Assembly: GCA_026770705.1 (NCBI GenBank)
Contig: JANJGN010000075.1
Coordinates: 1,612,001 to 1,676,000, forward strand
Reading direction: 5' to 3'
Origin: Isurus oxyrinchus
Taxonomy: Eukaryota
DNA: 64,000 nucleotides
The translations under genes were made by a program, and so were the position numbers. This document shows positions 35,812 to 62,871 of this stretch, in pieces. The notes beneath the pieces are model-generated. The model did not search any database. It was given only the letters and a program-made list of their open reading frames with translations, and was not told the origin of the DNA. The stretch's first letter is position 1. Every line of letters begins with the position of its first letter.

Positions 35812-35877
35812 CTACAGCTTCACCGCTGCGTAGAGGGTGCACTCCTCACTCTGGGCATGGCTGGTATCTCGCTGACA
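35812..35877 (-). CDS. Candidate terminal exon with ITSM-type motif
   Basis: TTGCTTTCATCATCAG|CQRDTSHAQSEECTLYAAVKL*. TLYAAV matches TxYxxV just before the stop. The splice path to the TM exon was not fully traced. Confidence 0.5.
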   Translation of the reverse strand, partial: CQRDTSHAQSEECTLYAAVKL

Positions 35878-36309
35878 CTGATGATGAAAGCAATCGTGCA
35901 ATTGGTCAGAAATTCAGCAATCGTCTTAAAATGTGAGCAGAAAGAGGCAAAAACTCAGCAGCGGGCTTGGTCTTGTGATCAGATGTTAATATGAAGCAGA
36001 CCTCAATGTCAAAGGGGATTGACTGTCTGCTTCTTGTTCCTTTTCCCAGTGAAGCTATTTGCACAGAGGGGAGCTGTTTCTTGTACTAACAAGTAGGGAC
36101 TCACCAGCAAAGGCAGGGAAACAGGAGATTCCGAAAAATTTAGGAGTTTACGACCTGAGCGATAAGTACCCCACCCCTACGAAACACCACTACTCCCCAC
36201 CCCGCCAACCCGCACCCACCCCCACTCCCATTCCCCGCACAAGCTTTTTTCACTTCATTGGGAAGGGATACTCTCGGGATGTGCATTGTTAGGCCGATTC
36301 CCGATCACC

Positions 36310-36900
36310 AGAAGAATATAAAAGCACAAGGTATTAGATTAGGAGTAGGCTATTCGGTCCCTCGATAATGTTCTGCCCTTCGAAAAGGTCATAGATAATC
36401 TGATTGCGTCCTTAACTCCACATTCCGATCCCTCCCCATCACTCTTCACTCCTTTGGCAGTGTAAATTCCATCTAACTCAGCCATTAGTACATTCACTGA
36501 CCCAGCCTCTGCTGCTCTCTGAAGGAGATAATTTCACAGACTACCGATTCACTGAGATAAAAAAAATTCCTCCTCGGTTATGCATGGGAGACACCTTATT
36601 TTTAACTCCCACCCCCTCCCCCAGGTCTATTTTCTCCTTGGTGTGGCAGTATCCTCTGAGTATCCACCGTGTCAAGCTCCATCACCCCACTAGAATCAAT
36701 TTGATTCCAATTTGATGATCACACTTTCGCCTGAACCGAAGTTTATATAGGCCCAACCTGATCCACCTTTCCTCATAAGTTTAGGCTCTCAAACCAGGGA
36801 TCAGCTTAGTGAAATTTCTTTGAACTGCTTCCAATGCAAATACGTCCGCTCCATAAATATTAAGATCAGGACCGCACACACGTGGTCTCACCAAAGCCCT
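36310..36900 (-). mobile_element. CR1 LINE 3' end
   Basis: aggagtaggctattcgg tail; cctttcctcataagt...ccagggatcagcttagtgaa. Confidence 0.8.
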
Positions 36901-36905
36901 ATCAG

Positions 36906-37036
36906 CTACCATTTTATCTCACAGTAAATGTTTCTACTTTTATCAATGCAGCATCAAAAAATCGAGGCAAAACAATTTCCAGGTTAGAATACATTAATGC
37001 ATGGTGCTGGACATTGGAATTTCACACTTGTTCAGT
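36906..37036 (-). pseudogene. Candidate decayed cytoplasmic-tail exon with ITIM-like motifs
   Basis: TTTCTACTTCCCAG|TEQV*NSNVQHHALMYSNLEIV... then, after a frameshift, IDKSRNIYCEIKW*. LMYSNL fits (I/V/L/S)xYxx(L/V). Confidence 0.35.
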
Positions 37037-37674
37037 CTGGGAAGTAGAAATATGACTTGCTTCGATAATAATGTTTCTTGTATTCCACACACAATCCATA
37101 TAGGAGCAATAACAGTAACATTTGAACAGTGCCTGTACCCGGTTCTATGGGGCTATATTTAAGATATACAGCTGCAAAAACGACATCTAAACTTTCAATT
37201 TACTTCATGGCCTGCACAAGGAGCAACTCTTCACTTCTTTTTCAAAGATTCGTGCCCAAATGAGGTTCGGCTGTTCAATCCACTGAGACAAATATTGTTC
37301 AGTTGGATTCTCTCCCCCGCATGCATTTCAGTGGCAATTTTAAATGTATTAAAGCTGTGATCGAAAATACATTTGTTCAATTAAACATTTACCAACGGAC
37401 AAGTCGATAATGACATTAAAAAAGAGAACAAGGACTCAGAGGGTGAATGAAGCAAAATATTGCTCACATCCTTCCAGGTGTCTGAAGGAGCAAAATAGAC
37501 AAAAGATCATCAGAGGATAGACAAAATTGCCCCCTGACCCGCGCACACCCCACTCCCTCAAGCTTCCACCCACATGTATGCACCCACATTCGCACAGGTA
37601 CTGAGGCACACACAACTCACACCGCAGAGCCCGCTCACACACACACAGACAACCCATCTGCTCATAGCACCGCC

Positions 37675-38172
37675 CCCTCAACCACCCACAGCACCCATCC
37701 CCTCAGCCGCCCACAGCAACCCCACCCCGCCTCAGCCGCCCACAGCAAACCCCCCCCACCCTCAGCCGCCCACAGCCACCCCCCCCACCCTCAGCCGCCC
37801 ACAGCCACCCCCCCCCACCCTCAGCCGCCCACAGCCACCCCCCCCACCCTCAGCCGCCCACAGCCACCCCCCCACCCTCAACCGCCCACAGCCATCCCTC
37901 CACCCTCAGCCGACCACAGCAATCCACTCTCCCCTCAGCTGCCCACAGCAACCCGCTCCCCCCTCAGCCGCCCACAGCAACCACCCACCCCTCAACCGCC
38001 CACAGCACCCCCAACCCCTCAACCGCCCACAGCACCCCCAACCCCTCAACCGCCCACAGCAACCCCAACCCCTCAACCGCCCACAGCACCCCCAACCTCT
38101 CAACCGCCCACAGCAACAGCCCCCCCCTCCACCGCCCACAGCACGCCCAACTCCTCAACCGCCCACAGCACC
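37675..38172. repeat. C-rich ~21-23-bp minisatellite
   Basis: (ccctca[g/a]ccgcccacagc[a/c]acc)n, about 22 copies; source of the Pro-rich ORF 37574-38212. Confidence 0.93.
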
Positions 38173-38984
38173 AATTGCAACTTACATCTTCTCCCTTCGG
38201 ATTTGTTTGTAGGATAAGATCAGCGACTAAATAAAACCAAAACATGTTAAAAATAACATTGATGAGTAAGTGCTGACAACATTTGTCCCTTTCAGGGAAG
38301 AGTTTGATGTCTATGGTAGGTCTGTTTTCTCGAGGATGCTTCATTAAGTAACCCTCGCTGCCAACAGATGGGAGCAAAAATCTTCAACCAGCACAAAGAG
38401 GCCTTAGATAGCTCGTGATGGAGCGAACACACTTCCAAAATTGGTCTTTCAGCCCCATGTTCTTCTCAATCAAGGAAATAGATCCTGCAGGTTTTTCCCC
38501 GGGAATGAGTAGCAGATTGACTCTGAGTGGCTCTCTATGCTTACCAGTATCACAAATTCAATATGATGTGGCAAGGTGTTACAGGCTCAACGCACAGGGG
38601 AGACCACTTAGGACTGAGCAAAGGAGAAACTTCTTCACTCAGTGCGTTGAAGCTCTGAAATGCTCTCCCACAGATGGCTGTGAAGGACAAATTACTAAAT
38701 ATATTTAAGAAGGAAATAGAATTATAGAATCTAAAAGTGTCAAGTGTTATGGAGCGAAAGAGAGAGTATGGAGTTGAGATAAGTAATCAGCCTTGATCAG
38801 ATTGAATGGTGGAGTAGGTTTTAAGAGCCGAATGATCTACGTCGGCTCCTATATTCTAGGTTTCTTTGCTTCAAGTCAGTCAGTTTAAACCTCACTTATG
38901 CCTCATATTTCACCCAGCCTCCTCTTAAAAACTTCTAAATGTTTCGGGTCGACCACTCCCAGGGCGTGTTCCATAATCCCAGCA

Positions 38985-39295
38985 TATCTGGGTAAACATT
39001 CCCAGTTGAAGTCCAACGCCCGGGTTTCCGGACGAAAAACAAAGCTGGCATAACAGTACAGCACTGAGGGGGCGCTGCACTGCTGCGTCGATCTGCAAAG
39101 AAAGGCTCCATCTGCTACCTTGGATGATGAAAATGATCCCGGGGGACCTTAGAATGGGAGTTCTCCGAGTTGTGGAGATTGATGGAAGCATGTGACTGCT
39201 GCTGCAGTCCGTAAATTAAGTTTGCTGTTTCTAATGATTAACCTCTCTGGAAAATCAGATCCATAACAATTGCAAAGCGCTTTGGAGGCGTCCAT
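38985..39295 (+). mobile_element. Degenerate DeuSINE/SacSINE1-like element
   Basis: cagtacagcactgagggggcgctgcactg core; tail gcaaagcgctttgg. Confidence 0.55.
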
Positions 39296-40795
39296 TGGTT
39301 GTGTAAATTATTTCATGAATGCAAGCCTTTCGTCTTTTTCTTTCAGATTATTACATTCATATCACACTATTGCTTCACGAGGGAGCTACCGTGTTCATCG
39401 CCTCTGATTTTTCTATCTCCCACAACTAGAAATATGATTGTGTTTCAAAGAACTCGATTAGCCAATCCCTCAGCCTCCCATTTTCATTAGCAATGAGGCC
39501 CAGCGATTCTAAACCCTGCTGAATGTTAGACATTTTTCGATCATCCTGGTAAATATTTTAGACTCACTCAAGTGTCTCTGTACATGTGTTTTTATCCTAC
39601 GCCGACCAGCATTGTTTTCGGTACTAGTTTTGCCGCACATTCCACTTAACCTTTTGACTTTTCAATTCTATCCCTTCCGAAATCACCTGCTTGGAGCGTG
39701 AAAGGAGAGTTAACTTTCGTCGCTTCATTTAGCAATTTGTATAACTGCAATTGCTGATCCACTTCCTACTCTGCAACTTTTAAGCTTTCATTTTCAATGT
39801 TTTCTGCAAACTGCTCAACATTCCCTGCCGGTTATTATTCATGACGCGCTGACAAATTTTTGAGCACAAAAGACAATTCTGTTTGTGGGAATTTCAATCT
39901 GAACTCACATGTCAGGTGTTCGTTGTTTTGCTCTCCAGAGGGCACCGCGTTCCTTCAAACAATAGAAAAGATCAGGTAGTCACTTAATCTGATATGACCC
40001 ATGTCATTAAACACATGAGGCAGGCATTGAATAGACAGGAGGCGGGATTCCCGTGTTTAGTGTAAAAGCTTTCCTGTTTGCGTGACCAGGAGCATGTTTC
40101 TATTAAACTGTGTCAAACCCAGATTATTACAGAGAACAAAGACAGAATTTATGAAGGGAATGAAACGCGCGCACATGTTTGAAATTAAGGCTGCGCGCAA
40201 AGGGTGAAGGAGCACGCGCACGAATCGGCCTCAAATGGCGGATGAGGCCGAATCTTTGAATGATCTTAAGGTAGGGAGAGAGAGATACCTGAATAGCAAG
40301 CGGGTGAAAGGTTGCTCGCCTTGGACGCACATGTGGGTTTCAGTTTCCAATTGGATCATCCATTACCGTACTGAATGGCGGAGTCGTTTCGAGGGGCAGC
40401 GTGGCCTACTCCTGTCCTTAATTCGGATCCCTAATTACCCTGGGGGGCTTAAGAACAAGGGAAGGCGATTCGGCCCTCGAACCTGCTCCGCCATTCCATA
40501 AGAACTTGGCTCACCTGATTGGGGTTTCAACTCCACTTTCCTGTCTGCCCACATGCCCCTCGACACAATTGCCTATGAACAAGACAAACTCCATTTGTCA
40601 GCCTTGAGCATATTCAGCATCCACTGCTCTCTGGGTGAGAGGGTTCCACAGAAAAAAAAAAAAACACCCTCCGAGAGAAAAAACTGGAGTTGGTTCACAA
40701 TCAGTGATTCAATGGCAGAAATATTTGAAAGGGTTAATTATATTCCTCCGCTTCTGCATTAATTCAACAACACAGTAGAGAAAGCAGGCGCAGGT

Positions 40796-40867
40796 AGGGC
40801 TGTAGCTTGGTGGTGGAGCTCTCGTTTCGCGTGCAGGAGGCCCCAGTCTCGATGTCCAGCATCTCAA
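40796..40867 (+). pseudogene. Full-length degenerate tRNA-Ala(CGC) pseudogene
   Basis: 72 nt agggctgtagcttggtggtggagctctcgtttcgcgtgcaggaggccccagtctcgatgtccagcatctcaa; collinear with tRNA-Ala but stems and B box damaged. Confidence 0.7.
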
Positions 40868-41084
40868 TGCTGCAGGATTTAAAAGGACATTATATATAAA
40901 TTAAACGCGCAGAGCACGCCAACAAAGCCACGGGAATGAAGATCAGAGTGCAGGTGTGAAGTGGAGACCTCGTGTTTAAATGAAAAATACACAATGCTTT
41001 CCTAGAATAGAAATTGCCTAAATAATGGCTTCTGATCATAATGTTGGTCACATGTCATTGAAATGCAACACCTTATGGTCTCAC

Positions 41085-41112
41085 CTGGATTCCATAATGC
41101 TTCTCTTCTTCC
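41085..41112 (-). CDS. Juxtamembrane cytoplasmic micro-exon
   Basis: CTTCTCAG|GG AAG AAG AGA AGC ATT ATG GAA TCC AG|GTGAGA. Encodes (G)KKRSIMES, in frame with the TM exon; basic stop-transfer residues. Confidence 0.6.
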
Positions 41113-42304
41113 CTGAGAAGGAAACATAAGGATTAGAAGTCCGGAACAGAATAGAAGTTTGAGTGCTCATGGGTGGAGTTGTCCAGCCAGGTAAGGATTG
41201 GTAACAAGCCACTCTAACGTTCAGATCAGATTAGTCTGGTACATTGGTTGAAGGAAAGCTTGTTTGCGAGTCTTTCAACATCAAGGTTAGGGAGCATTTC
41301 TTAAGGGAAAATGCCCATTGAGCAATTTGTGTGTCTCAGAAAGGGGGGATGCCGAGGAGCGGGGGCAGGGGGGGTGGGGGGATGTGGGGGTGGCAGGGGG
41401 CGATATCAAAGCAAATGTACCATTAGTTTGCAGAGGGTTACCCAAGGGTAGAATGGCAGTGGGCTAGGAAGTACAGTGCAGAATGGAGAAATGGATTGTC
41501 ACTGACATTCAAAAGTCAGAATCGTCCAGATAAGGAAGGCCGCTGAACGCAGCCTCACTCATCCCCCCATCCCCCCCACCCCTCCCCTCCCCATGACTGT
41601 GCCCCAATCCCATTGCAAATTCCATACGTTTTGTCAATAATTCCAAGACGTTCCTCTCCAGGACATAACCTGTTGTAATTCCTTTTAGCCCCATTAGTGA
41701 TTGAAAAACTTCCTTATATCTGACCCAGTTTACATTACAGCAGCTGGAGTCTGCTTACATTTGTCTAATCCTGATTTCCTGCCATGTTCCAGATTCCATT
41801 CCATCGTTTCTCTGAACAACCTCTATAAAATCACGACACTGAGCTCTCCCTCCATTCTTCTCAACCTAAGAGTTTTGCTGTAGATATTTGAATTTGTTGG
41901 ATTTTTGAATGCGATACTGCTTATTCCATCCCCAGCCTAGGAACAATTCTAACCAGGTGATATGTCCTGGACAGCTGCGCAAACGCAGCAGTGCGGCTGA
42001 GGACCGCATCATGAACCAGCCATCTGTTCAGCTCTTGTGAAATCAATGACGCCGGTATTGGATGGAGCTTCTGACAGGTGGTTGATGTGATATTCCCGGT
42101 CTTGCTATTCCACCCAAGGGTAATTTCCACCCATGAGTTTGCAATTGACTATTTCACCCTTCATACAGGGATCACCCTACATTTAATGTTGAAGTTTAGG
42201 CCGTTGGTGTTTTAGGGATTTAGTTCATACTGACCACACATTGTCTACACTTATCTTCATCGGTTCATTTGTAATCACTGGTTGTTACACGTGGTCTGAC
42301 CTAC

Positions 42305-42397
42305 CTTTTATCCAGAGGCAGACACCCAAGAGAGCAAGGAGAAGAATCAGACCCAAAGCAGAACGAACACCAGCAGCCAGAGCAACAGGATTATTTT
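42305..42397 (-). CDS. Transmembrane exon of the Ig receptor
   Basis: TTCAG|AA AAT AAT...ATA AAA G|GTAGGT. 93 nt, phase 1-1, encodes (E)NNPVALAAGVRSALGLILLLALLGVCLWIK. Confidence 0.82.
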
Positions 42398-42751
42398 CTG
42401 AATGACGTAAAGGGGGAAGAGTAGTACAGTGTTAATTAACATCTTCTACAACCAAGGCAATAATCTGCAGCTTAATCAGCACAACAGTTGGGGCACGAGT
42501 GCCATAGAAAACAGAGGGTCAGAGACAGAGAGAGATACAAACACAGAGTAAGAAAATTATCCAGCAGAGAAGACCATTCGGCCCATCGCGCATGCGCCGA
42601 ACCCTTGAAAGACATGGTCAATTAATCCACGGTCTTATCCCATTCGTTCTTTCCTCTTAGCCCTGCAAATTTTATTTTAACATGTATTCTCAGTTCAGGT
42701 TTTAAAACTGTTGAATTGCACTCTGTCGTGTTTCAGATCACAAAAAAAAAA

Positions 42752-43844: not shown

Positions 43845-43854
43845 ACAGCACACA

Positions 43855-44214
43855 GTATTACAGTGATGTGCATAGGGTCACTCAGAGCCGAGGATAGATT
43901 TCCTCCGTTAATCAGTGCATCAAACCGACAGTTATAAATTCCTATCTCAGAGTGATCGACATTCTTGATAATCTTTTAAATGAAAACCAAATCAACAAAA
44001 TTGGGATAAATCAGGCACAGTCGACATTCTTGATGGTGAAGGTGACAGAATTGATCCCTGAAGCAGGAGACTTGAACCCATCGTGATTCGCATCACCTTA
44101 TCTGTGCAGGTAAAACGTGATGGTAGGATTGCCCCGGGATTTGTACAGTGAAATGTAACATTCCTGCCCTGAACAACTGCACTAGATCCACGGATATGTA
44201 TGTTTCAGGAAGAC
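43855..44214 (-). pseudogene. Disabled membrane-proximal Ig exon (type E), not in ORF track
   Basis: CCAG|GLPETYISVD/SAVVQGRNVTFHCTNPG/NPTITFYLHR*GDAN...SVTFTIKNVD[insert]HSEIGIYNCRFDALINGGNLSSALSDPMHITVI. Two frameshifts, a TAA stop, a 65-bp insertion and no GT donor. Confidence 0.78.
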
Positions 44215-44339
44215 CTGGTATTAGAATCGAATATGTAGGAACGATTGATTCAAAATTCAATTCTGACTTTTGCCAAAAATGAATATTACCAAAAAATAAC
44301 TAATGCTAAAATTTCATGAAACGCTGCTTAGTCCTTATA

Positions 44340-45105: not shown

Positions 45106-46024
45106 CTGGATAGCCCTCACGTCGAATGCTGTGCCCAATTAGGGGCGTCACAATTTGGGAGGGATAGCGAAGCCCTGTCAAGCAGGCAGGGGCAATTTTC
45201 TGGAAAGCTTTGAGAGAGGGGGGAGTTCGGCGTGGAGAGAGACTGCGAAGCTGGGAAATTTCTCGCAGTTCAGCGATTGTTAAGCGCGATTTTCATCGAG
45301 CTTTGCAAAGTTACTAAAGACTTCTGGATTATGGAGCTCAAGTCCGAGACTATAAGCATCTACCCACGACAGTGCAGCACTCCCACAGTAAAGGCAGCGG
45401 GTGGAGTGTCCGGCTGCATTTGAGGAACTCATGAACTGGTGAAATTTGACTCCAGTGCCTTATAATTCAGGCGATAGTGCTGCAAAAATAGTTTTTTTTC
45501 TAATGTTGAGACAGACCAATACATCTAACATTAGAATATATGGAAATAAAGCCAATTCGTGAGAATGAACCAGCACCGACGTGTAACTCTGCGTTGGTGC
45601 TGTGGCCTTGAACACCGAAGCGAATTTCTCACTGATATAACTCACAAAAAAGCCACTGTTTATTTTAACGGAACACAAAATTTCCGACTGGGCCTAATTC
45701 AATGCCAATTAAGACGGTGACATTTCCAACCACTGGACACTGGCGTCCCCCAGTGACAGAACATTTCAGCTGCCGACTGTCTCCTCACATCACACACCTG
45801 CCTTCCTTTCATACCCACACCAGCCCCTGAAATCACAGCACATGTGCAGCGGGTGAATTCAGCCCCCAACGGAAAAAAAATGTGGAATGAGATCGCTGAT
45901 CATTTGGACTCCATCTCCGCTTTCTTGAAACGATTCATATTGTTCCAGTGAATGAAGCGTTGTTTACTTGAGAATACCAACACCATAAATAGGAATGTTT
46001 AAATATCTGTACTCTGTCACTCAC

Positions 46025-46318
46025 CTTCTATGGTCACCGTGACAGCCTGGCTCTGTTTAGAATCGAACTGCCTGCTCTGGACGGTAACACTATATTGACA
46101 TCGGTATTGTCCGCTGTGGCTTAGACCGCTATTCGGGAATGTGAACGTTTTGGAAGTTCTGCTGGTTGTATTAAAGGGCAGCTGTTGATGTCCTTTATAA
46201 AAATGAAACATTTTCTCTCGATTATCTCCAGTCACGGTGCAGGTCATGTTGATCGTCTCTCCTGCTGCAGACACACCCGTGGTCTGATCAAGATATATCA
46301 CTGGGGTTTTTAGCGGAT
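46025..46318 (-). CDS. C2-type Ig domain exon D (intact)
   Basis: 294 nt, CAG/GTGAGT, phase 1-1. DPLKTPVIYLDQTTGVSAAGETINMTC...FHFYK...SGQYRCQY...SKQSQAVTVTIE. Confidence 0.87.
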
Positions 46319-47986: not shown

Positions 47987-48280
47987 CGGTGGCAGTCACA
48001 GTCACAGCCTCACTCTTTGAGGATGTTAGTTGCCGACCTCTGATTGACATTCCGAATAGGCATTGGTATCGCCCGTTGATACTTCTACCATTAACCCGGA
48101 ATGTTCCAGTATTGTCATGTGTGTCAGTTTGCCATGAGTGCAGCTGTGCATCAAATCTGTAAAAGTAGAAGGTTTTCTCCCGAACATCCCCAGTCACAGT
48201 GCAGGTCATGGTGATCATCTCCCCTACAACATACACCCCTGTCGACTGATCAAGTGTTAACTTTGGTTTTCTTAGCGGCT
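47987..48280 (-). CDS. C2-type Ig domain exon B (intact)
   Basis: 294 nt, CAG/GTGAGT, phase 1-1. EPLRKPKLTLDQSTGVYVVGEMITMTC...FYFYR...GRYQCLF...SSKSEAVTVTAT. Confidence 0.85.
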
Positions 48281-49840: not shown

Positions 49841-50134
49841 CTGTGATAGTCATGGCCACAGCCTCGCTCTTTGGAGATGTTAGATGCCGATCTCTGACGG
49901 AAACTCTGTATTGACATTGGAATAGCCCTTCGCTAATTCTACCTCTAACCGGGAATGTTCCAGTATTGTCATTTGTGTCAATTTGCCAGGAATACTGTCG
50001 TTCATCATCTTTCTAAAAAGATAAGATTTTCTCCTGATCATCCCCAGTCGCAGTGCAGGTCATGGTCACCGTCTCCCCTATTACATACACCCCTGTCCAT
50101 TGATCAAGTGTTATAACTGGTTTTCTTAACGGCT
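49841..50134 (-). pseudogene. Ig exon type B with a single in-frame stop
   Basis: 294 nt with intact splice sites. EPLRKPVITLDQWTGVYVIGETVTMTC...LSF*KDDE...FQCQY...SPKSEAVAMTIT; TAG at 50013-50015 where paralogues have Tyr. Confidence 0.85.
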
Positions 50135-50995
50135 CTGTGATTTTAAAAATAATGGACAAGTCAATTGTAACTGAGTCGCCCGAATGTAATGTTCTGTAAT
50201 TGTTGGTACCGCAAAGATAATTGAGCCGTACCGAAGGAGTCTGTTAACTTCAACGAATGAGATTCGATGAAGGGTGAGTCGGGGTGTTGATTGAACTTAA
50301 AACATAAATAATATATTTAAAAACGCATTTGAAAAACTCTTTTTCAAAATTGCAACAGTGTATCAGGCGATTTGTGAGAGAGTTAATTCTATGCGTGTTG
50401 CAGTGTTTGTCTGTCATTGTGCGTTCCTGTGTTTGCGTGCGTGTGCGTGCATGTTTGTGGGCGCGTGGGCTTGCGTTTCGTGCGCGTGTGTGCCTCCATG
50501 AAACAGGTTGACTGCAGCCGGACAAAAAAAGCGGCTCATCAGGACCTTCCAAAGGGAAGTCATGGATGGGAATTTTTTGACGTGGTAGCAGATTAAACAG
50601 CAACTTGCAAACAAATCTGTATAAACATTGCTAAGGGATAATTTAGCTGATGATTTTGGATAAATGCTTGGGAGTGAATATAACTTGCCTTCTAATGCAC
50701 AACAAAGAAGCGGCAAATAATTTCTTGCCATTTATTGCCACAACTCGTAAATAAATGAAATGTTAATAGCTCCTTCAAAGAACTTGCATTGGCAAGTTGT
50801 CTCCGTCTGTGCTTTTGCATTTTCTGATTCTGTGAGTAATGGTGGCACTGACAACAGCAGATCAGAGTTTTGATCAGTATTAGACATGAGATGAACACAA
50901 AGCCCCCTTGATTGTTCGGCAATGTGCAGCTAGGATTATTCCTATAATGAGCAGGTGTGTTTGAATGGGCACATCTGCTGTTTCCCCTCAATCAC

Positions 50996-51185
50996 CTGCT
51001 ATCGTGACATTCACAGATTCACTAAGCTGGGATTCTAACTCCCTTCCCTTGACGGAGGGTCTATTTTTACAATGTTACCCCCGCCCCCTCCCACTCATTG
51101 GTTTGTATGTTTGAATGTTCCACAATTGTCCTTTGTGACGATTTGATAAGAGAAGAAATGTTGATTATCTTTGCACAAGAACGGT
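50996..51185 (-). pseudogene. Degenerate Ig exon (type C)
   Basis: FLCKDNQHFFSYQIVTKDNCGTF..* ... PSVKGRELESQLSESVNVTIA G|GTGATT. Contains a stop and frameshifts; 5' part missing. Confidence 0.62.
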
Positions 51186-52485
51186 AATGAGACAATGGTC
51201 GGATAATGTGCAGATTGTGAGTGATGTGTTCTGATGGATTCATATTTGGACACAGGAGAAAGGGCAGGACTTACGATTAATGTTCTGTGAGGTAAAGGCA
51301 AGTGGGACCACGTACAGACAACTGAGAGCCGAGCCTCCAGACGTTCATTACTTGCTCATCTATAACACAGTATTTTTGAAATTACAACTCTCGCACATTA
51401 CCCTCACTCTGTCAGGGAACTTGGATCCTGGCGTTAACGTCCAATAGGGCATTCATATAGCACCTACAGTTCAGCACTCACTCAGTCTTGGCACTGGGGA
51501 ATGTCGGCCTGGATTAGGGACCTTCATTCATGGAGTAAATGCATCCATCTCCGACAGTGGGACGCACCCTCTGTTCCAGCACCGAGGGCATGGTCAGCCT
51601 GGATTGTGGGAGCTCAAGCCCTAGAGTATGTACATCTATCTATAAGAGAGGAGCAAGCCTTCAGTACTGGCACCAGAGGAGTGCCAGCGTGGATTATGGA
51701 GCTGAAGTCCAGGAATGAATACATTTACCTCCGACAGTGGAACACTCCCTCAATATTGGGAGTGGGGTATTATAGTGTAGGATTACGGAGCTCAGGTCCA
51801 AGGTATTGCACATCTACCTCCGACAGTGCAGCCCATGTTTTGTACTAGCACCTGGGAGAATGTCGACCTGGGTGATAGATCTCCAGTCTGAAATGGCGCT
51901 TGATCAGATAACTTTATGACTTTAGAGTAGCGTGCTATATTCTTGATGAGTACAGGAATGACGGTAGTCCAAGACAAATGCAAGTATTGCCAGCATAAAA
52001 GTAGACAATAAAAGTGAAAGTTGAAAGGATCGGACGCTACATCATGCCTTACCACGTGCTGGTTTTGGGATGTGTTTTATGTATTTTGTGACCGCCTCAA
52101 TGGCCGGGGCTGGAAACTCGATCCCAGTATGATGTCAGAAAGAGCATCGCCCAATCCAGAGCTTGACAGTGACGTCACCCAACAATAGATACACCCACCC
52201 CCAGTGGCTGAATCCTTCAGCTGCTGACTGTCCCCTTACAACTTACTCTCGCTTTCCTACCATTCCCATCTCAACACTAGCACTGGTCGTTGATGCCCAA
52301 TGGGTGAATTCAGGATCTATTCTTTCAGGGAACGCGTCAGGACTTGAGCAATGAAGTCAAAGATTTTCCCATAATCTCCTCTCCCCGATCACTGAGCGTT
52401 TCATTTTGATGCAGGGACCTGAATTTGTGAATATACCAAACCTTGTGAGTACAGGTATTAACAATCTCTGTTCCCTGTCACTCAC

Positions 52486-52773
52486 CTGTCGTAGTCAGAG
52501 CCACTGCCTCGCTCTTTCGGGATGTTAAATGCCGACCTCTGATGGAAATTACGTATTCACATTGGTATCGCCCTTCGCTACTTCTACCAGTAACCCGGAA
52601 TGTTCCAGCATTGGTGGTAATTCGCCTAGAGTACTTCCGTGCATCATCTTTGTAAAAATTGAAGGTTTTATCCCGATCATCTCCTGTCACAGTGCAGGTC
52701 ATGGTGACCGTCTCTCCAATTACATACAAACATGTCGATTCATCAAGCGATATCAGTGGTTTTCTTAGCGGCT
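52486..52773 (-). CDS. C2-type Ig domain exon B (intact)
   Basis: 288 nt, CAG/GTGAGT, phase 1-1. EPLRKPLISLDESTCLYVIGETVTMTC...FNFYK...GRYQCEY...SRKSEAVALTTT. Confidence 0.85.
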
Positions 52774-54134
52774 CTGTTTTTAAAAAGGTCAATGAACATG
52801 GCAATTATAAATGGGTTGTACAAATGTAATATACCGTATTTTTTTGGTGGCACAAAGGAAATTGATCCATATTGAAGGAGACTGTTGACATCACCAAAAG
52901 AGATTCGATAAAGGGTGAGTTGGGATTTTGATTAAACTTAACAAATAAGTCACACATTTCAAAGCACATTTCAAAAAACCTCGTTCTTTTTCAAAATTGA
53001 AATGGAATATCGGGTGGTTTGTGATCTATCTAATTCTGTGCTTGTTGCTGTGTGTATCTGTGTTGTACATGCCTGTGTGCATATGCGTGAGTTTCGTGTG
53101 CATGTGTGCCTCCATTAACCAGGTGGATGGCAAATTGTCAAAGACGCAGCTCATCACCACCTTGAAAAGGGCAATTACGGATGGGAAATACTTGAGTGTA
53201 AGGGAAATGCAGGAAGAATTTATTGAAAGGCAATTACCTCAAATTTCCAGGCAGCCAGTGATATCAAGTGCATTAAAATTTAGAGGTTCCCAGGTGAACC
53301 TGGCACACCCTTAGGGCCTGCAATCACCAGAAAAGCCTTGGGAGTCAGACTGGAGACGGAGGATGAAAACAACATGGGTTAAATGTGCTCTTCAATAGTT
53401 AAGGGTAGGACAGATTGTCCTAGCCTAGATATGGTGTGAAGGCTCTGCCTGGGTGAAGGGGACTGTGTGTGCCTGGATCCATAGATACCTGTGTAATGTA
53501 AACCTATATGCTGACAAGATTGGATTCTGAACACTGTTCTTGTACGTGATCAGTGATACATAAATAAGCTACACACTTGTAATTTTGCAGAGTGCTCCCT
53601 CAAGCTGCTTTGAGGTGGTTCTCTCCTTGCAAATGTTCCAATGAACGATCGTAACTAGTATCATATTTTCCAGTGGTTCATTTGTCAGTGTAACCAGAAA
53701 AAGGTGAACGCAGATTTAACAGTAACTTTCAATGGAGCTGGAAAAAGATTTTAAATGCATAATTTGGCAGAAATTTTGGATAATCACCTGTGAGTGATTA
53801 TAACTTGCCTTCTAAATGGCAAGGAGTAAGAGGCAATTTAATTCTATCCTTGCCATTTATTGCCACATCTCGTAACAAAATGAAAAATTGATAGCTTCTT
53901 CAAAGAGTTTGCACAGGCAAAATGGGCCGAGTGGCCCCCGTCCGTGCTGTTGCATTTTCTGATTGTGATTAATGGTAACACTGGCAGAAATGGGTCAGTG
54001 TTGTGGATCAGGAGTAGACAAGAGATGAACACAATGTCCCCCTGAGAGTTAGAGGATGTTAAACAAGGATTTATTCTCTAATTCGCAGGAATGATTGAAT
54101 AGATATATTAGCACTCGCGTTCGTAATCACTCAC

Positions 54135-54345
54135 CTGCTACAATGACATTCGCAAATTTACTGGGATGGTAACTCCATTGACGGCGGCCCTTTATATACA
54201 ATGTTACCGCCCCACCCCCCCACCCCCCCCCACAACCGCCACCTCACCCACCCTCCTTGGTTTGTAACGGGCACAGTGAATGTTCCAGTGTTGTTCTTTG
54301 TGATGATTTGATAAGAGGACAAAGGTTGATTATCTTTACACATTA
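54135..54345 (-). pseudogene. Degenerate Ig exon (type C)
   Basis: CKDNQPLSSYQIITKNNTGTFTV... interrupted by a G-rich insert; ends at CAG|GTGAGT. Homologous to 50996-51185. Confidence 0.6.
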
Positions 54346-55489
54346 ACAATAATGAGACAATGACCGGATAATGTGCACCTTGTGAGTGAGGTGTTCTGAT
54401 GGATTGATATTGGGTGACATGAAGCGGACAGAATTACGGATTGATGCTCTGTGAAGTGAAGGCAAGTGAGGCCCCATGCAGATACCTGAGAGGCGGGAAT
54501 CCAGACTTTGTTTACATTTTCTCATTTGAAACACAGCACATCTGAAATTACAAATCCCCCCCTTTCGCCCACTGTGTCGGAGGACTTCGGTGCTGAAGCT
54601 AAGGGTCATTCGTGCACTCATCTACCTCCGCCAATGCAGCACACCCTCGGTTCTGGCACTGGGAGGGCGAGGGGTGTGGGTGGTTAGTGTTGGCCTGGAT
54701 TATTGTGTTCAAATCCTGGAGTATATACACCTACCTCCGACAGAGCAGCGCTACCTCAGTGATTACAGCGGGGAAGTGTCAGTTTGCAATATGGTACTCA
54801 AATCACAGTGTGTGTACATCGACCTCAGGCAGTGCAGCACTCCCTCAGCACTGTCGTTTTGTGTGAGTGAGACATCCTGGATTATTGAGCTCAATCTGGA
54901 ATGGGAGTTGATTATTCAACCTTCTTACTTAGTGTAGCGTGCTAAAGTCTAGATAAGGACATCAGTGAATATAGTCCACGACAAAGGCGCCAAGTTACAG
55001 CATCAATGTGGAGTATGAAAGCCAAACGATGAAAGGTTTGGACGGTACATCTTTCCCCGCCGCAGTTGGATTCTGCGTTGTGGTTTCTCTCTTGTGTGAC
55101 CGCTTCAATGGTGAGGGTTGGGCACTCGGACCCAGTATGATGTCAGAAGGATCATTACCCAATCCCGAGTTAGACCGTGACGTCACCCAGCAATGGGCAA
55201 CCCCTCCTCCCCCAGTATCACATTGCTTCAATGCTGACTGTCCCTTCACAGCCTCCTCCTTCTTTCCTCCCCTTCCCGTCTCAGCACTTGCAGTGGTAGT
55301 TGATGACCAGCTGTTGAATTCAGGGCCTTTCTCTCAGAGAGAAAGTCAGAACTTGAGCAATGGAGTCACGGCTTTCTTGGAAACTCCTCTTCCCAATCAC
55401 TGACCGTTTGATTTTGAAGCAGGGATCTGAATTTGTGAATATGCCAAGCCTGGTGAACAGTATTAACCATTCGATTCTCTGTCACTCAC

Positions 55490-55672
55490 GTATGGTTTTC
55501 ACGGCCACGGACTCGCTACTTCGAGAAGTTTGGTGCCGACCCCAGATGGAAATTCTACCATTAAGCGGGAATGTTCCAATATTGTCATTTGTGCCACTTT
55601 GGCTAGAGTACTGCAGTGCATCATCTTCATAAAAATAGATTATCTCCCGAACACCTCCAGTCACAATGCAGA
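55490..55672 (-). pseudogene. Disabled Ig exon (type B): 5' part replaced by SINE-derived array, second Cys deleted
   Basis: CIVTGGVREIIYFYEDDALQYS...GTFPLNGR/ISIWGRHQTSRSSESVAVKTI with GTGAGT donor. It lacks the YQC segment and the N-terminal PLRKP part. Confidence 0.8.
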
Positions 55673-57424
55673 ACTGGCACCGGCATGTTGACTGGATTAT
55701 GGAGATGAAGGCCTGTAGACTGTAAAAGATGTACATTTTCCTCCGAGACTGCAGCACTCCCTCAGTATTGACACCAGGAGGAGTGTCCGCCTCGATTATG
55801 GAGTTCAAGCCCTGGAGGATATACATCTCCCTCCGACAGTGCAGCATTTCGTCCTGCCTGAGGATTGTCGGGCTGCATTCCCGAACTCAAGTCCTAGAGT
55901 ATAAATAGCTTTGCAGAACCCCCTCAGCACTGGCGCTGGCGGAGTGTCGGTCTGTATTATGGAGCTCAAGTACTGGACTAAATAAACCTGTCTCCAAGTG
56001 TGCAGCAGTACCTCAGTACTAGTGTCAGGCATTGTCGTTCTGGAAAATGGACCTCAAATCCTAGAGTATATACATCTACCCCCGACAGTGTGGCACACCC
56101 TCAGTATTACTATCGGGGGACTGTCGGCCTGGTTTTTGCAGAACAAGTTCTAACAGATGTACATGTACCTCCAAGAGTGCGTCACTCACTCAGCATTATT
56201 ATGGGGGGTAGGGTGAGGCGGCGGGGGGCGGAAGGCGTGTGATGTCGGCCTGGAAGATGCAGATCAAGTCCTAAAGTAAATGCATGCCCCTCCGCCAGTG
56301 CAGCGCTAACTCCTTACTGGCGCCGGGGTGAATATCGGCCTGATTAATGAAGCTGAAGTATTTGGAGTGGGAGCAAACACCAGATCTTCCATTTTCAGGA
56401 GGGAGTGATACCAAATTCCGTACGGGCTGTCGAATACAGATAATCCAAAATGACAGGTGTTCGTCCCAGTTTCAGTGTGGGGAATGAGAGCGAAAATGTG
56501 GCAATAACTGTTCAATTCTGGGTGCAGAAACTCGAACATATCAACATACAAATATACGAAATAGGGACAGGATTAGGCCACTCGGCTCCTTCCAGCCTGC
56601 TGCGCCATTCAGTCAGATCATGGCTGACCTGATGTCACCTTAAACACAATTTCCTGCCGATTCCCGAGAAACTTTCAACTTTCCCATCCCCGCGTTAATA
56701 AAGGATCTATATCGATCTGCCTTCAAAAAATATTCAAATGCTCAATATTCGCCTATTGAGGTATAGAGTTCCAAGACTCACCACCCTCTGAGAGAGAAAA
56801 CCATTCTGCTCATCTCTGCATAAAATGCGCGGCCACTGCTTTTGAACCTGGACAATACATTCTAGGTTATTCCCTAAGAGGAAGCATCTTCTCCACATGC
56901 TCCCTGTCAAGTCACCTCTGGATCCCAAAGAATGGGGCGGGTTGGGGGTTTCGCTGTGACTTCATCAACGTTTGGAGTAGGATATTCTTGGACATTTTGA
57001 CCTCAGAACGGACGTAGAACTGTCATCAGTTGGACTGCGACGTTAGATCAAAGCGCATGATTGAAGCTCGCCCCAGTAACTGAAAATTCGAGCTGCTGCC
57101 TGTCCCGTCACCCACCACCCCCCCCCCCCACCCGCCCCCCCTCCCCCCCCCCCCCCCCCCCACCCCCCCACCCCCGACTCCTGCCTTCGCTCATACCCTA
57201 CTCAGACCCTGCCATCACTGACATTGCACAGCGGCTTCATTCCGCTTCGATTCATTCACAAAGGCTGTCACGGGTTGAGAAATTAAATCGAAGGTCATTC
57301 GGTTCCACTGCTTCCTCTGTACATTGCACGTTACATTTGTTGCAATGTCTACAACATGGTTGTGTAAAAAAAAATAAAGCAGTGATTTATTCTCATGTAA
57401 CAGTTTATGTTCCCGGTCACTGAC

Positions 57425-57718
57425 CTGTTACAGTCACCATCACAGGCTCGCTCACCGGGGAATCTATCCACCGACCATTGACAGAAACGCTATATGCGCA
57501 GCTGTATTGTTCTCCATCTGTTTCAGCGGTAACACGAGCTGTTCGAATGTTGTACTTTGTGGTGAACTGTGAGAGGGACAGATTCTGGTCCCCTCTGTAA
57601 ATGTAGAAAATTTTATCCCGATCATCTGCCGTCACAGTGCAGGTAATGGTGACCCTCTCTCCGAAAACATAAACCCCAGTCCATTGATCAAGTCTGATCA
57701 CTGGTTTTGATAGTTTAG
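57425..57718 (-). CDS. C2-type Ig domain exon A2 (intact, duplicate of A1)
   Basis: 294 nt, CAG/GTCAGT, phase 1-1. KLSKPVIRLDQWTGVYVFGERVTITC...YSCAYSVSVNGRWIDSPVSEPVMVTVT. Confidence 0.88.
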
Positions 57719-59607
57719 CTGTTGTGGAATAAATGAAAGAATGATGAGAAGTGGATCAAGGGAATGTCATGTACACTTGAACGTTACTAGCTCAATGTCC
57801 ATTGATCTGTGTGGAAGGGAAGTGTTTTACATCCGGGACACAGATTCCACAAACGGTGAGTTCGGTTTTTGGCTGCAAAGTAACGGAGACATCAAAATGT
57901 ATTTCAAAGCCCTTCTTAGCAACACAGCACGACCCAGACAGCTTTACAAACACTGAACTGATAGTGAAATATTCCGAATGGTGAAATGGAGCAACATTTC
58001 GCTGAGTAAGCTTGCAGAAACAGTATTGATATAAGGAAAACTTAATAACGTAATTATGGGCTAACAATTGACCTCAGGACACGTTGAAGAACTGCCCAAT
58101 GACTTTCTTAGAAATACTGTCCATGGTTTATTTAGTCTTCACCTGAAATGAGTGATGTTCATAACATCTCATCAGATGGAAACCCCTTCTGATAGTGCAG
58201 TGTTCTTTCAGGACTGCCACCGGTGTGTTGAATGGATTATGGAGATCATGTCCTGGAGTGCAAAGAGCATGAGCCCGTACCTCCGGTAGAACAGAGCTCC
58301 CTCAGCAGTCGCACCTTGGGAGTGTAGGCCTGGCTTATGGAGAGCAAGAACTAACATGTATACATGTACCTGCAAAAGTGATTCACACCCTAAGCATTAT
58401 TATTGGCGGGGGGGGGGGGGGGGCGGGGGGGCGTGGGGGGGGTTAGGAGGGGGGGGTAGTGGGCTGGGGGGCGGCAAGTGGTGGCGTTCTGGATGATGCA
58501 GATCAAGTCCTAAAGTAAATGCGTGTATCGCCGACAGTGCAGCGCTAATGCCTTACTGGCGCCGGGGTGAATATCGGCCTGATTAATGAAGCTAAAGTAT
58601 TTGGAGTGGGGGAAAACACCAGATCTTTCTTTTTCAGGATGGAGTGATACCAAATTCCGTACGGGCTGTCGAACAAAGATAATCCAAAACGATGGGTGGT
58701 CGTCCCAGTCTCAGGGTGGGGAATGAGAGCCAAATTGTAACAATTACTGTTCAATTCAGGGTGCAGAAACTCGAACATATCGACATACAAGTAAACGAAT
58801 TAGGGACAGGATTAGGCCACTCGGCCCTTCCAGTCTGCTGCGCCATTCAGTCAGATCATGACTGACTTGATGTCAGCACAAATACAATTTTCTGCCGATT
58901 CCCGAGAACGTTTAACCACCTCTTTAATAATGGATAAATATCGATCTGCCTTCAAAAAATGTTCAAATACTCAATATTCGCCTTTTGAGGTATGGAGTTC
59001 CAAGACTCACCACCCTCTGAGAGAGAAAACCATTCTGCTCATCTCTGCATAAAATGCGCGGCCACTACTTTTGAACCTGGACAATACTTTCTAGGTTATT
59101 CCCTAAGAGGAAGCATCTTCTCCACATGCTCCCTGTCAAGTCACCTCTGGATCCCAAAGAATGGGGCGGGTTGGGGGTTTCGCTATGACTTCATCAACGT
59201 TTGGAGTAGGATATTCTTGGACATTTTGACCTTAGAACGGACGTAGAACTGTCATCAGTTGGACTGCGACGTTAGATCAAAGCGCATGATTGAAGCTCGC
59301 CCCAGTAACTGAAAATTCGAGCTGCTGCCTGTCCCGTCACCCACCACCACCCCACCCGACTCCTGCCTTCGCTCATACCCTACTCAGTCCCTGCCATCAC
59401 TGACATTGCACAGCGGGTTCATTCCGCTTCGATTCATTCACAAAGGCTGTCACGGGTTGAGAAATTAAATCGAAGGTCATTCGGATCCACTGCTTCCTCT
59501 GTACATTGCACGTTACATTTGTTGCAATGTCGACAACATGGTTGTGTAAAAAAAAATACAAGCAGTGATTTATTCTCATGTAACAGTTTATGTTCCCGGT
59601 CACTGAC

Positions 59608-59901
59608 CTGTCACAGTCACCATCACAGGCTCGCTCACCGGGGAATCTATCCACCGACCATTGACAGAAACGTTATATGCGCAGCTGTATTGTTCTCCAT
59701 CTGTTTCAGCGGTAACATGAGCCGTTCCAATGTTGTTCTTCGTGGTGACGTGTAAGCCGGGCATTTCCTGGTCCCATCTGTAAAAGTGGAAGGTTTTATC
59801 ACGATAACGCCGAGTCACAGAGCAGGTAATGGCGACCGTCTCTCCGACTACATAAACCCCAGTCGGTTGATCAAGCTCTATCACTGGTTTTGATAGTTTA
59901 G
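59608..59901 (-). CDS. C2-type Ig domain exon A1 (intact)
   Basis: 294 nt, CAG acceptor, GTCAGT donor, phase 1-1. KLSKPVIELDQPTGVYVVGETVAITC...FHFYR...YSCAY...SPVSEPVMVTVT; Cys pair 47 aa apart. Confidence 0.88.
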
Positions 59902-61399
59902 CTGTTGCGGAATAAATGAAAGAACGATGAGAAGTGGATCAGATGAATGTCATGTACAGTAGAACCTTACCAACTCAATGTCTATTGATCTGTGCGGAAG
60001 GCAAGTTTTTACATCCGGGATTCAGATTCCACAAACTGAGTTTGGTTTTTGCTTACAAAGGAACGAAGACATCAACATGTATTTCAAAGCCCTTCGTAGC
60101 AACTCAGCACGCCCCAGACAGCTTTACTTACACTGAACTGACAGTGAAATATTATGACTGGTGAAATGTCGCATCATTTCGCAGAGCAAGATTCCAAAAA
60201 CATCACTGAGATAATGAAAGCTTAATAACGTCATTGTATACAGGCTAACAATTGACCTCAGGACACTATGCAGTACTGCTCAATGACCTTCTTCGGAATA
60301 CTGCCCATGGTGTATCTTGCATGCACCTGAAATGAGTTATGTTCATAACATCTCATCAGATAGAAACCCCCATCTGATAGTACATTGTTCTTTCAGGACT
60401 GGCACCGATGTGTTGGATGGATTATGGAGATCATGTCCTCGAGATTTAAGAGCATGTGCATGTACCTCCGGTAGAACAGCAGTCCCTCAGCACTGGAAAA
60501 GAGGTAGTGTCGGCCGGCATAATGGAGCTCAAGTCCTAGAGAATATAAATTAACATCCGGCAGTTCAGCACTCCCTAAAATCTGCACCGGGGGAGTGTCA
60601 TCCTGGATTATGGAGCTCAAATCGCTGGATTGGAAATTGAAATCAGTGCCTGCTGAATCCGGTGAGATTGCTACCAAACCATGTAAAAAGAGTGTCAATG
60701 GCGATAGTCCAAAACAAGGGGAAGTTCTGACAACGTCAATGTGGAGAATGAGAGGCAGTGGGTGGAGGCAATGACTGGCTGATTCAGCCTCCCCATCGCA
60801 TGGGGGGATAGGAGACATGGTGATGTCATCAATTGTGGGATGTCAACACTGGCGGTCACATTGACATCATAAAGTGTCCAACCGTGTCCTTAGATACAGT
60901 GTGACGTCAAACAACAATGGTCCACTTTACCAGGGACAGATTGTTTCAGCTACTTCCTGTACACTCACAGCCACCTCCTGCTGTCTCACCCCTCTGGTTC
61001 CCTCAGCCCCTACAGTCACAGCTGATACATTCAGGCCTCAGTCTTTCCTGGCATCTGGCAGGAGTTGCGCAATGAATTCCAAGGTCATTCCGTTATACCC
61101 CTCACTCCTCATACCAAAAGTACTATTTGCTTACAGTAAATAACTAAATCTCTGCTGCCCACTCTCTCCTCATTCTCATCAATTTCCATTGATCCATGAC
61201 TCCTGTTCCCACAGAAGTACATTTTCCCCATGAAGAAATACTTTGCTTTCTCAATCATCTCATTCTTAATGTCAACCCAACACACAAACCCCCCACCGAC
61301 CACAACACCTCCTCCTCTTCCCCCCCACCCCACCTCTTCCCCATGTTCCGCGATGCCTCTTTATCTGTGTTAACTCCCCCAATCCCTGCTGTACCCCGA

Positions 61400-61675
61400 C
61401 AGCTCTGCGCATCTCCTGAGCTTTCCACCGACCCACAATTGGCGTCATCAGCTGCCTGGGGGACCGAATCTCTGGAATACCCTCGCTGCACGTTGTCACC
61501 TTTCTCTGTCATTCTTCAGGATGCACCTTCATACACGCCTGAACCGTATAGATTTTCGCCATTGACACTAAAATCTCTGTCCATTACACAAGGTAAAATT
61601 TGGTTTCATAATAGTTCCGGTGAAGCACCTTGCAGCGTGTTACAGCATTAAAACCGCTATATAAATGCAATTGTC
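61400..61675 (+). mobile_element. L2-like LINE/SINE 3' tail
   Basis: cagctgcctggg...tctggaataccctc ... gtgaagcaccttg...gctatataaatgcaa. Confidence 0.55.
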
Positions 61676-62838
61676 ACTAAGAGACTGTCAGAGGCGGCTC
61701 TCTTTGAGTGCTCAACTACAGATTATACAGAAGTAACGGTGGCTAACGGTGTTGGACAGAGAGGAAAGTGACAGAGGTGCAGTAGAGCGTATTCTACTCT
61801 CATATTTAGTGCTGCAGTGCGATCAAAACTGCTCTGATGGGGCAGGGAGGGGATTCCACCAGCATGTGGGATGCGACCTTCCTGAACAAGGTATTAGTCA
61901 AAGCTAGTCGGAAAACACAATAACACAGACAACTACATGAGTAACACATTTCTTTTAACTGAGTTAACCGTTGTTCGAAATGGAAATCAACAGTTGCTCT
62001 GGTTGATCCATTGAAGAGTAAGAGATGCTGATACGGGCTAGTTCAGTGGACAGGGAAGATATTTGTGAGATGTGGCCTCTTCAGCTTTAGAAAATGGTAT
62101 CCGGGCTACATGGTGTGAATTATGACAACAGGCTGCATGTACAATGCTGAGTGTAGAATATAATTGGATGAAATTGAGTTGTTTCTGGTAAACGAACTGT
62201 TTCCTGGACGAGTTAGAGGTATTCTATGCCACTCGTTTCCGAATGCAAACCAATGAGAAGTAAACTTGAAATTGAAACTAATCCTGCCAATGACGATGCT
62301 GACAAGAAAGTGCTGAGGCGAGATAAAGCTTGAACCTGCTACTGCAGAATAACTGCAGACCAGGTAAATGGATAGTCTGTTAGATTAGGTTGTTAGCGGT
62401 TATGTAACAAAGTATATAAAAGGAGGGAACAGAGAGATCAGTTACGCTGGCATTGAAAGGCTGAACAGACATAAATGAAACCGTGGCCTCCTTCGTCCTT
62501 ATAAGGAACGTGAGCACTTGGAATGGGAAATGAAAACAAATGTCGAAGTCACTTTAACACTCAATAGAACATTGGTCTGTGACCACCTCCAATACTGGAT
62601 TTCTGCCTCGTCATTTCCGGCAGAGAAAGGAAATGGGATAAAGTGTAAAAAAGGGCATTTATCATAGCATCATCGCACTAACAACTGCTATTATACATGT
62701 TGCATTGCAGCTATCAATGATACAACACGAAGGGTTACAGCAACCAAATTCAATTCGATTACAGCGGACTGATTGATTTAACAGAATGGGAATGGATTAT
62801 TCACTGGCAGGATTTAAAAGAGAAATGTCAATACTTAC

Positions 62839-62871
62839 ATTGAGACACGCTTATCTGAACTGCAAAAGCCA
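62839..62871 (-). CDS. Leader mini-exon (second signal-peptide exon) of Ig-superfamily receptor
   Basis: Minus strand TCTTCTCTCTTTTCAG|TG GCT TTT GCA GTT CAG ATA AGC GTG TCT CAA T|GTAAGT. 33 nt, phase 1-1, encodes (x)AFAVQISVSQ and joins in frame to the Ig exon at 59901 (S-KLSKP). LILR/KIR/FcR genes have similarly split leaders. Exon 1 was not identified. Confidence 0.7.

Follow-up and report, generated by a model that had tools for sequence, protein, structure and literature searches.

Live and dead immunoglobulin exons in a spliced receptor-type gene of the shark Isurus oxyrinchus

Can a gene in which half of the domain-coding exons are broken still give rise to a receptor? The question is raised by a locus in a 64,000-nucleotide (nt) stretch of DNA from the shark Isurus oxyrinchus (assembly GCA_026770705.1, contig JANJGN010000075.1, positions 1,612,001-1,676,000, forward strand), which is referred to here as the window and contains no runs of N. 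The locus occupies window positions 35812-62871 on the minus strand and consists of a row of immunoglobulin (Ig) exon loci, some of them intact and others disabled, together with exons for part of a leader, a transmembrane (TM) segment and a cytoplasmic tail. Transcript contigs join intact exons in frame across disabled ones; the gene is spliced and is not a silent pseudogene. It is probably an expressed gene for a type I membrane receptor of a C2-type Ig multigene family that extends across sharks and rays and is related to the FcR-like and leukocyte receptor complex (LRC) genes.

The exon row and the transcripts that cross it

All searches were run exon by exon or with database proteins. Ig exons were detected by a stop-to-stop scan for Cys...YxC segments, which returned five open Ig-like segments at 46-60 kb, each of them on the minus strand; by tblastn with these five open exons as queries against the whole window, which matched 46020-46313, 47982-48275, 49836-50129 (one stop), 52481-52768, 55485-55715 (damaged), 57420-57713, 59603-59896 and a fragment at 43859-43936; and by a DNA profile built on the six full-length exons, which, run on the 64 kb, added the 3' halves at 50992-51179 (E = 1.5e-14) and 54131-54338 (E = 5.8e-11) and returned no further Ig exons below E = 3. 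A preliminary description, made from the sequence alone, had counted ten Ig exons on the minus strand, five intact and five disabled, and tblastn and the DNA profile give the same count (Table 1).

The five intact exons are assigned by Pfam to Ig_2, Ig_3 and ig. The six full-length exons (the intact five plus the nonsense exon B50) have AG/GT flanks, start with two codon-completing bases and are 294 nt long, except for 52486-52773 with 288 nt; all are in phase 1-1, as had been claimed for the intact ones, so that any subset of them stays in frame. The TAG of B50 (50013-50015) replaces a conserved Tyr codon that is TAC or TAT in the other five, and no usable acceptor was recognised for the damaged exon at 55485-55715.

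Table 1. Exons and pseudo-exons of the locus, listed in the direction of transcription (window coordinates).
Feature	Position	Strand	Properties
Second leader exon	62839..62871	-	33 nt, phase 1-1, ag/gtaagt; encodes AFAVQISVSQ
Ig exon A1	59608..59901	-	Intact, 294 nt, AG/GTCAGT
Ig exon A2	57425..57718	-	Intact, 294 nt
B-like pseudo-exon	55485..55715	-	5' part wrecked or unrecognisable; 11-codon gap over the second-Cys region
Pseudo-exon, 3' half only	54131..54338	-	Frameshifts and a G-rich simple-repeat insertion
Ig exon B52	52486..52773	-	Intact, 288 nt
Pseudo-exon, 3' half only	50992..51179	-	Copy of the 54131-54338 half
Ig exon B50 (nonsense)	49841..50134	-	Full length, AG/GTGAGT kept, single TAG
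Ig exon B48	47987..48280	-	Intact, 294 nt
Ig exon C46	46025..46318	-	Intact, 294 nt
D-type (membrane-proximal) pseudo-exon	~43859..44190	-	At least one frameshift, one in-frame stop, internal insertion; borders approximate
TM exon	42305..42397	-	93 nt, phase 1-1, ENNPVALAAGVRSALGLILLLALLGVCLWIKG
Cytoplasmic mini-exon	41085..41112	-	28 nt, KKRSIMES, pyrimidine tract, GTGAGA donor; predicted
Cytoplasmic exon	39909..39952	-	RNAVPSGEQNNEHLT
Cytoplasmic exon	38186..38226	-	ADLILQTNPKGED
Last coding exon	35812..35877	-	CQRDTSHAQSEECTLYAAVKL, stop 35812-35814, TxYxxV motif

Sequencing runs were matched to positions 46020-56019, which returned five runs of one organism labelled 'RNA? (a guess)'. In three of these runs, all of one sample, 5-6% of the sampled words are present. 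Contigs from four runs were aligned across 46851-52850: X1, X2 and X3 from one sample, and X5 from another sample and study. In each of runs X1, X2 and X3 one contig (1579, 1329 and 651 nt, respectively) joins the sequence from 52486 upward to 48280-47989. The gap of 4205 nt begins with CT and ends with AC on the plus strand, that is GT..AG on the minus strand, falls at the predicted exon borders and contains the nonsense exon B50 and the half-exon 50992-51179. The same contigs continue beyond 47989, and the reverse complement of the loose end equals the first 28 letters of C46 preceded by AG, of which the G is the last base of B48 and the A a one-letter synonymous difference at 47988. The contigs thus read B52-B48-C46 in frame. 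Run X5 contributed a contig of 162 nt on 52595-52756 with zero differences and no other letters, and B52 is covered by contigs in all four runs aligned. The disabled exons had been noted to lie between intact ones in such a way that any product requires skipping; it is this skipping that the contigs record, from 52486 to 48280 and then to 46318.

The length of the longest contig can be partitioned as 230 + 294 + 566 (the remaining predicted coding sequence) + 489 nt. As a matter of arithmetic and not of observation, this fits a poly(A) site just past an AATAAA that lies 457 nt beyond the stop codon (35349-35354). Genomic DNA would hardly account for a skip with exact GT..AG borders in runs of only 84-116 million letters. 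The preliminary description had treated a lack of spliced transcripts as the mark of a pseudogene; in-frame spliced contigs were found instead.

The joined contigs could be alleles or could come from a very close paralogue of the window gene. Three differences from the reference are consistent among them, two of which change an amino acid (Thr to Ile at 48127 in B48 and Thr to Ala at 52618 in B52), both in mid-domain. Runs X1 and X2, from the same sample, have five and one mismatches in B52, respectively, which hints at two alleles or copies. A contig of 130 nt from run X3 departs from B52 at 52506 into other letters, also ending at the start of a C-type exon, and is probably derived from a paralogue.

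The absence of B50 from the contigs may reflect either skipping by choice or removal of the including transcripts by nonsense-mediated decay. The preliminary description had gone further and proposed an ectodomain diversified by combinatorial or mutually exclusive splicing. In its fullest form this explanation takes the inclusion of phase-1 Ig exons as a device for diversification, with B50 as a 'poison' cassette that lowers expression. The common phase of all full-length exons and the skipping of B50 despite perfect splice sites speak in its favor, as do predicted isoforms of relatives: in the Carcharodon carcharias gene closest to this one, isoforms X5 and X6 (434 against 532 residues) each lack an A exon, not the same one in the two cases, X3 is without the TM exon, X2 has another 3' end and X4 ends just past the ectodomain, and ray and teleost relatives have many predicted isoforms. 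However, a single joint is seen within 46851-52850, identical in three runs of one sample, and since contigs hide rare isoforms they neither show nor exclude variety. The Carcharodon isoforms are automatic predictions, and occasional skipping of an Ig exon, which is common in multi-Ig receptors, needs no special device. On balance a diversification device appears distinctly unlikely, and the earlier proposal of combinatorial splicing finds no second joint to build on in this segment.

Some very short contigs also fell on the aligned segment. Three intronic stretches (47322-47358, 47461-47492 and 46906-46933) are matched in four runs by such contigs, with depths in the thousands, as well as by pieces of long unrelated contigs, and most likely represent a dispersed repeat transcribed elsewhere. 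Inside B52, the stretch 52666-52699 (TCTVTGDDRDK) is matched by a contig of 34-38 nt with one mismatch, at a depth of about 25000 in X1 and X2 and of 59 in X3, and the long X1 and X2 contigs break at or just upstream of it. This sequence is perhaps common to some very abundant transcript, for instance that of a highly expressed relative.

The predicted protein and possible signs of decay

The leader mini-exon, the TM exon and the last coding exon with its stop at 35812 were confirmed at the positions first given for them, and a search of the whole window returned no extra copies of the leader, TM or tail exons. The peptide of the second leader exon agrees with the latter half of leader sequences in other members of the family (AFAVQWSVAQ in P0008, AFAVQRSVPQ in P0162). 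A scan of 62872-64000 gave no convincing ATG-to-donor phase-1 exon, and leader exon 1 and the start of the gene very likely lie outside the window, past 64000.

The TM segment contains an Arg at a position where four paralogues (P0002, P0008, P0158 and P0162) have Gly or Ala. Because the tail must pass from phase 1 to phase 2, a cytoplasmic mini-exon of 28 nt is invoked. A scan of 39956-42304 for such an adaptor exon listed 44 candidates, two of which passed a filter for a pyrimidine tract and Lys, and only the one given in Table 1 resembles the corresponding peptides of relatives (KKENMRET in P0154, KTKSISET). The codon split between the two following exons is T/TC, a Phe codon at the place taken by the Tyr of LTYADL in the Carcharodon relative, so that the proximal immunoreceptor tyrosine-based inhibitory motif (ITIM) is lost (LTFADL) and the distal TxYxxV motif alone remains. 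The latter (TLYAAV) would resemble an immunoreceptor tyrosine-based switch motif. The intron between the last two coding exons houses a long G/C-skewed minisatellite (about 37440-38150, units of about 27-29 nt) that yields open Gly/Trp/Arg-rich and Pro-rich frames and was noted on both strands.

Taken together, these parts suggest the following course of events. The region coding for the ectodomain would have grown through tandem duplication of phase-1 Ig exons and would now be in birth-and-death turnover, with five live and five dead exons, while the spliceosome joins the live exons and passes over the dead ones, as observed from B52 to B48 to C46. The predicted product would carry at most five Ig domains, in the order A1-A2-B-B-C, followed by a TM helix that includes an Arg and by a tail some 60 residues long. 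A regulatory receptor of leukocytes is the most likely function, in which a bound ligand would cause the distal Tyr to be phosphorylated and SH2 phosphatases or adaptors to be recruited. Through its TM Arg the receptor may also associate with an acidic residue of an adaptor carrying an immunoreceptor tyrosine-based activation motif, which would make the receptor bi-functional, by analogy with CHIR-AB. For the ligand, the cell type, the signalling and the use of A1 and A2, this is what we infer.

Several observations weigh against an expressed receptor gene of this kind. The assignment of the runs to RNA is itself a guess, the aligned contigs (46851-52850) do not reach A1 or A2, and each contig piece departs from the window sequence at 1-5 letters (95-99% class). 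With no leader exon 1 found in the window, the 5' end and the start codon are provisional. In addition, half of the Ig exons (5 of 10) are dead, and the TM Arg and the change from Tyr to Phe set the gene apart from all four paralogues compared, which are possible signs of decay.

The last of these points also bear on the alternative that the gene is a decaying paralogue, still transcribed and spliced but heading for loss, with a product that is non-functional or absent. Besides the disabled exons, the Phe codon in the proximal ITIM, the Arg in place of Gly or Ala and the leader exon 1 that was not found, this explanation can call upon ratios of nonsynonymous to synonymous substitution (dN/dS) of 0.44-0.94 between exon paralogues. 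These ratios, however, are below 1; open frames and AG/GT borders have been preserved in five Ig exons, in the TM exon and in four tail exons; the contigs are spliced in frame around dead exons, and their length fits a complete 3' half with a poly(A) signal. Moreover, pseudo-exons are usual inside working genes of such families. In Xenopus, for example, the FcR-like gene models described in the accessible part of PMC2413239 used only exons without frameshifts or stops. The preliminary description had held a decaying paralogue to be as plausible as a functional receptor; the in-frame spliced contigs weaken that alternative, which is now best regarded as unlikely.

Turnover of the array

Comparison of the window with itself shows that an A unit of 2.2 kb was duplicated once, with 85% identity between the copies, and that the B-type units are 66-74% alike. 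Along the A1/A2 alignment the identity is 74-92% over most of the 2.2 kb, with a minimum (74%) in the exon centre, and rises to 96-99% at 59736-58984 (against about 56800-57550 in the A2 unit), a tract that takes in the 3' third of the Ig exon plus some 600 nt of intron. Clearly, 58984-59736 is a conversion tract between the live exons A1 and A2, adjoining a fast-changing exon centre. The dN/dS values given above are high for ordinary genes but never exceed 1. Along with the identity of about 85% per domain to the nearest Carcharodon gene, they bear out the rapid evolution that had been proposed for the locus.

Conversion from pseudo-exons, also proposed as a source of diversity, fared differently. 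If the dead exons were kept as donors of gene conversion for the live ones, conversion would have to act in the array, and the A1/A2 tract demonstrates that it does. However, this tract links two live exons, no recent conversion tract between a dead and a live exon was found in the self-comparison of the window, the units that carry dead exons reach no more than 66-74% identity to any live unit and are without a tract of high identity, and in three out of five cases the dead exon is a half or has lost the second-Cys region. A role of the dead exons as donors is accordingly considered highly improbable.

A broader explanation would combine these elements and view the exon row as a device for both diversification and dosage, in which B50 acts as a poison cassette, conversion between A1 and A2 and frequent amino-acid replacement in the exon centre keep the binding face variable, and the family perhaps includes shark antibody receptors, the last because CHIR-AB1 and FCRL5 are the nearest solved relatives. 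As a whole it is a long shot.

Outside the locus, positions 18565-18621 (minus strand) hold a leader exon 1 of the type found in the family, MSRSSSYWNMETGVSLLLF, followed by G/gtgagt and 89% identical to the N-terminus of Carcharodon P0156 and P0008. Apart from this exon and a few weak repeat-like matches, tblastn with 175 proteins returned no other exons of the family in 1-35 kb, whether second leader, Ig, TM or tail. The leader exon at 18565-18621 may open a neighbouring gene whose first intron is very long and runs out of the window, or it may be an orphan.

Relatives and comparison with known receptors

A profile of the five exons was searched against 1.84 billion representative proteins and gave 1441 matches at E values of 0.001 or less and 136 at 1e-30 or less, most of them multi-domain. 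The ten top matches looked up are all chondrichthyan, with genera that include Carcharodon, Cetorhinus, Heptranchias, Mustelus, Scyliorhinus, Pristiophorus, Pristis and Mobula. The names given to relatives by automatic annotation at NCBI are mixed: FCRL5 in most cases, but also LILRA6, KIR3DL1, OSCAR, IGSF1-like and 'basement membrane HSPG-like'. Among ten lower-ranked matches looked up, seven belong to ray-finned fish (gar, cyprinids, clupeids and knifefish; named FCRL5, 'titin' or 'sialoadhesin-like') and three to a ray, sawfish or catshark, in which as many as 25 stretches were matched and isoforms are numerous. Three relatives stand out by their length, P0004, P0010 and P0100 from sawfish, electric ray and Carassius, with 13-25 predicted Ig domains and, in Carassius, isoforms numbered up to X43. 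Variably spliced, long rows of exons may be a general trait of the superfamily.

The nearest relative is the gene of Carcharodon carcharias that encodes XP_041035999 and five further isoforms, with 85% identity on A2 and C46. No database protein closer than about 85% per domain was found, the exact gene being unannotated in the collections searched. From the leader through the order of domains and the TM segment to the tail, the gene is collinear with proteins of Carcharodon and Cetorhinus. A domain tree of 48 rows, built from nine proteins and six window exons (with X at the stop), places C46 as sister to domain 4 of XP_041035999 (support 100/97) and A2 inside the clade of its domains 1-3 (98/92). 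The domains form clades by type (A 100/97, C 100/99, D 100/100), that of B being weak (79/96), and the B exons are without a close partner. Hence the gene belongs to a shark/ray family of multi-Ig receptors defined by a collinear leader, A/B/C(/D) domains, a TM segment and a tail with tyrosine motifs. The initial view of a leukocyte-type receptor gene of the Ig superfamily in a shark is supported.

On assignment to the LRC family in particular, as first proposed, the evidence is divided. Among solved structures the best total belongs to FCRL5 (PDB 9loc; E = 6.7e-16, 61.6 bits summed over nine domains), whose best single domain reaches 15.4 bits over profile positions 2-73 only. The best single domain is that of the LRC member CHIR-AB1 (PDB 2vsd; 23.0 bits, positions 2-97/98), a weak match (E = 3.3e-4) that includes the YxCxY and S-x-x-S-D/E-P-V stretch. 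Other single domains scored about 20.7 (FcgammaRI), 17.6 (LILRB1, E = 0.035), 17.3 (GPVI), 16.8 (LRIG1) and 15.0 bits (FCRL4). AlphaFold2 run on the five-exon alignment gave a poor model, with a mean predicted local distance difference test score of 58.8.

The second leader exon fits the pattern of neither family. Signal peptides of FcR-like genes are encoded on two exons of 30/21 bp, according to the available portion of PMC2413239. Here the second leader exon has 33 nt, and the leader exon 1 at 18565-18621 counts 31 nt from its second ATG, which departs from that rule. In LRC genes the second leader exon is 36 nt long, a length to which 33 nt is close but not equal. Activating receptors of the LRC carry an NxxR motif in the TM segment, as stated in the part of PMC6557307 available; here the segment reads ...LAAGVRSALG..., with Ala three residues ahead of the Arg. 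No marker genes of LRC synteny were identified in the window. The gene is therefore assigned to the shark family and, more broadly, to the FcR-like/LRC superfamily, a placement that takes in both the LRC and the FcR-like alternatives.

In the text accessible to us, a 2014 survey (PMC4016189) found no clear homologs of FcRL or C2-only LRC genes in sharks, and the same survey and a second one (PMC13337447, 2026, section 5.3) present such a receptor family as absent from these animals. A review of fish immunity from 2019 does not use the terms 'KIR', 'NK cell' or 'leukocyte receptor' in the main text available, and among its references is a report from 1988 on Fc-receptor activity towards shark IgM (PMC6795676). 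In the literature searched, which left out most subscription journals and supplements, no description of the shark family was found. The family is nevertheless already visible in automatic annotation, and the gene is one ordinary member of it.

The locus, its transcription and the many shark and ray relatives show a large family of C2-only receptors with tyrosine motifs in these animals. The origin of this receptor design is thereby moved back to the root of jawed vertebrates, and the family offers candidates for shark antibody receptors and for receptors of natural killer type. No new mechanism is demonstrated; the value of the gene lies in a clean example of exon birth and death, in which transcripts prove the skipping of a nonsense exon. 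Rows of phase-1 Ig exons, pseudo-exons, exon skipping and paired or bi-functional signalling are usual in LRC, FcR-like, Xenopus XFL and teleost LITR genes.

Comparison with known systems starts with the Carcharodon gene (XP_041035999, predicted 'Fc receptor-like protein 5' X1-X6; P0154, P0002, P0151-P0155), which is of the same family and probably of the same gene lineage. Both share the layout of TM segment and tail and the end ...TLYAAVKL, and neither uses a membrane-proximal D domain. The Carcharodon models have four A-type domains (one of them partial) and no B-type domain, whereas two B exons are used in the contigs of the window gene; Carcharodon also keeps the Tyr in LTYADL and a Gly in the TM segment, where the window gene has Phe and Arg.

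Among receptors of other vertebrates, chicken CHIR-AB1 has one Ig domain in place of up to five; antibody binding by the window gene is no more than conceivable. In CHIR-AB genes a positively charged residue of the TM segment goes together with a tail that bears an ITIM, as described in the accessible part of PMC6760009, and in this they resemble the window gene with its charged TM residue and tyrosine-motif tail. MDIR was considered as a further lead and dropped, as these are V-domain receptors. Human FCRL5 has the C-strand F-Y motif, as here, and like the window gene it and the FCRL5-like or LITR-type receptors of fish have long rows of C2 domains and tails with Tyr motifs. Pseudo-exons occur in some KIR genes, and human LILR and KIR receptors in general share with the window gene an ectodomain of C2 domains only, one phase-1 exon per domain, a split leader and pseudo-exons; the paired activating and inhibitory designs of these human receptors can also be likened to it. 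They differ in that the similarity is marginal (LILRB1, as scored above) and in that the TM Arg of the shark gene does not lie in an NxxR motif.

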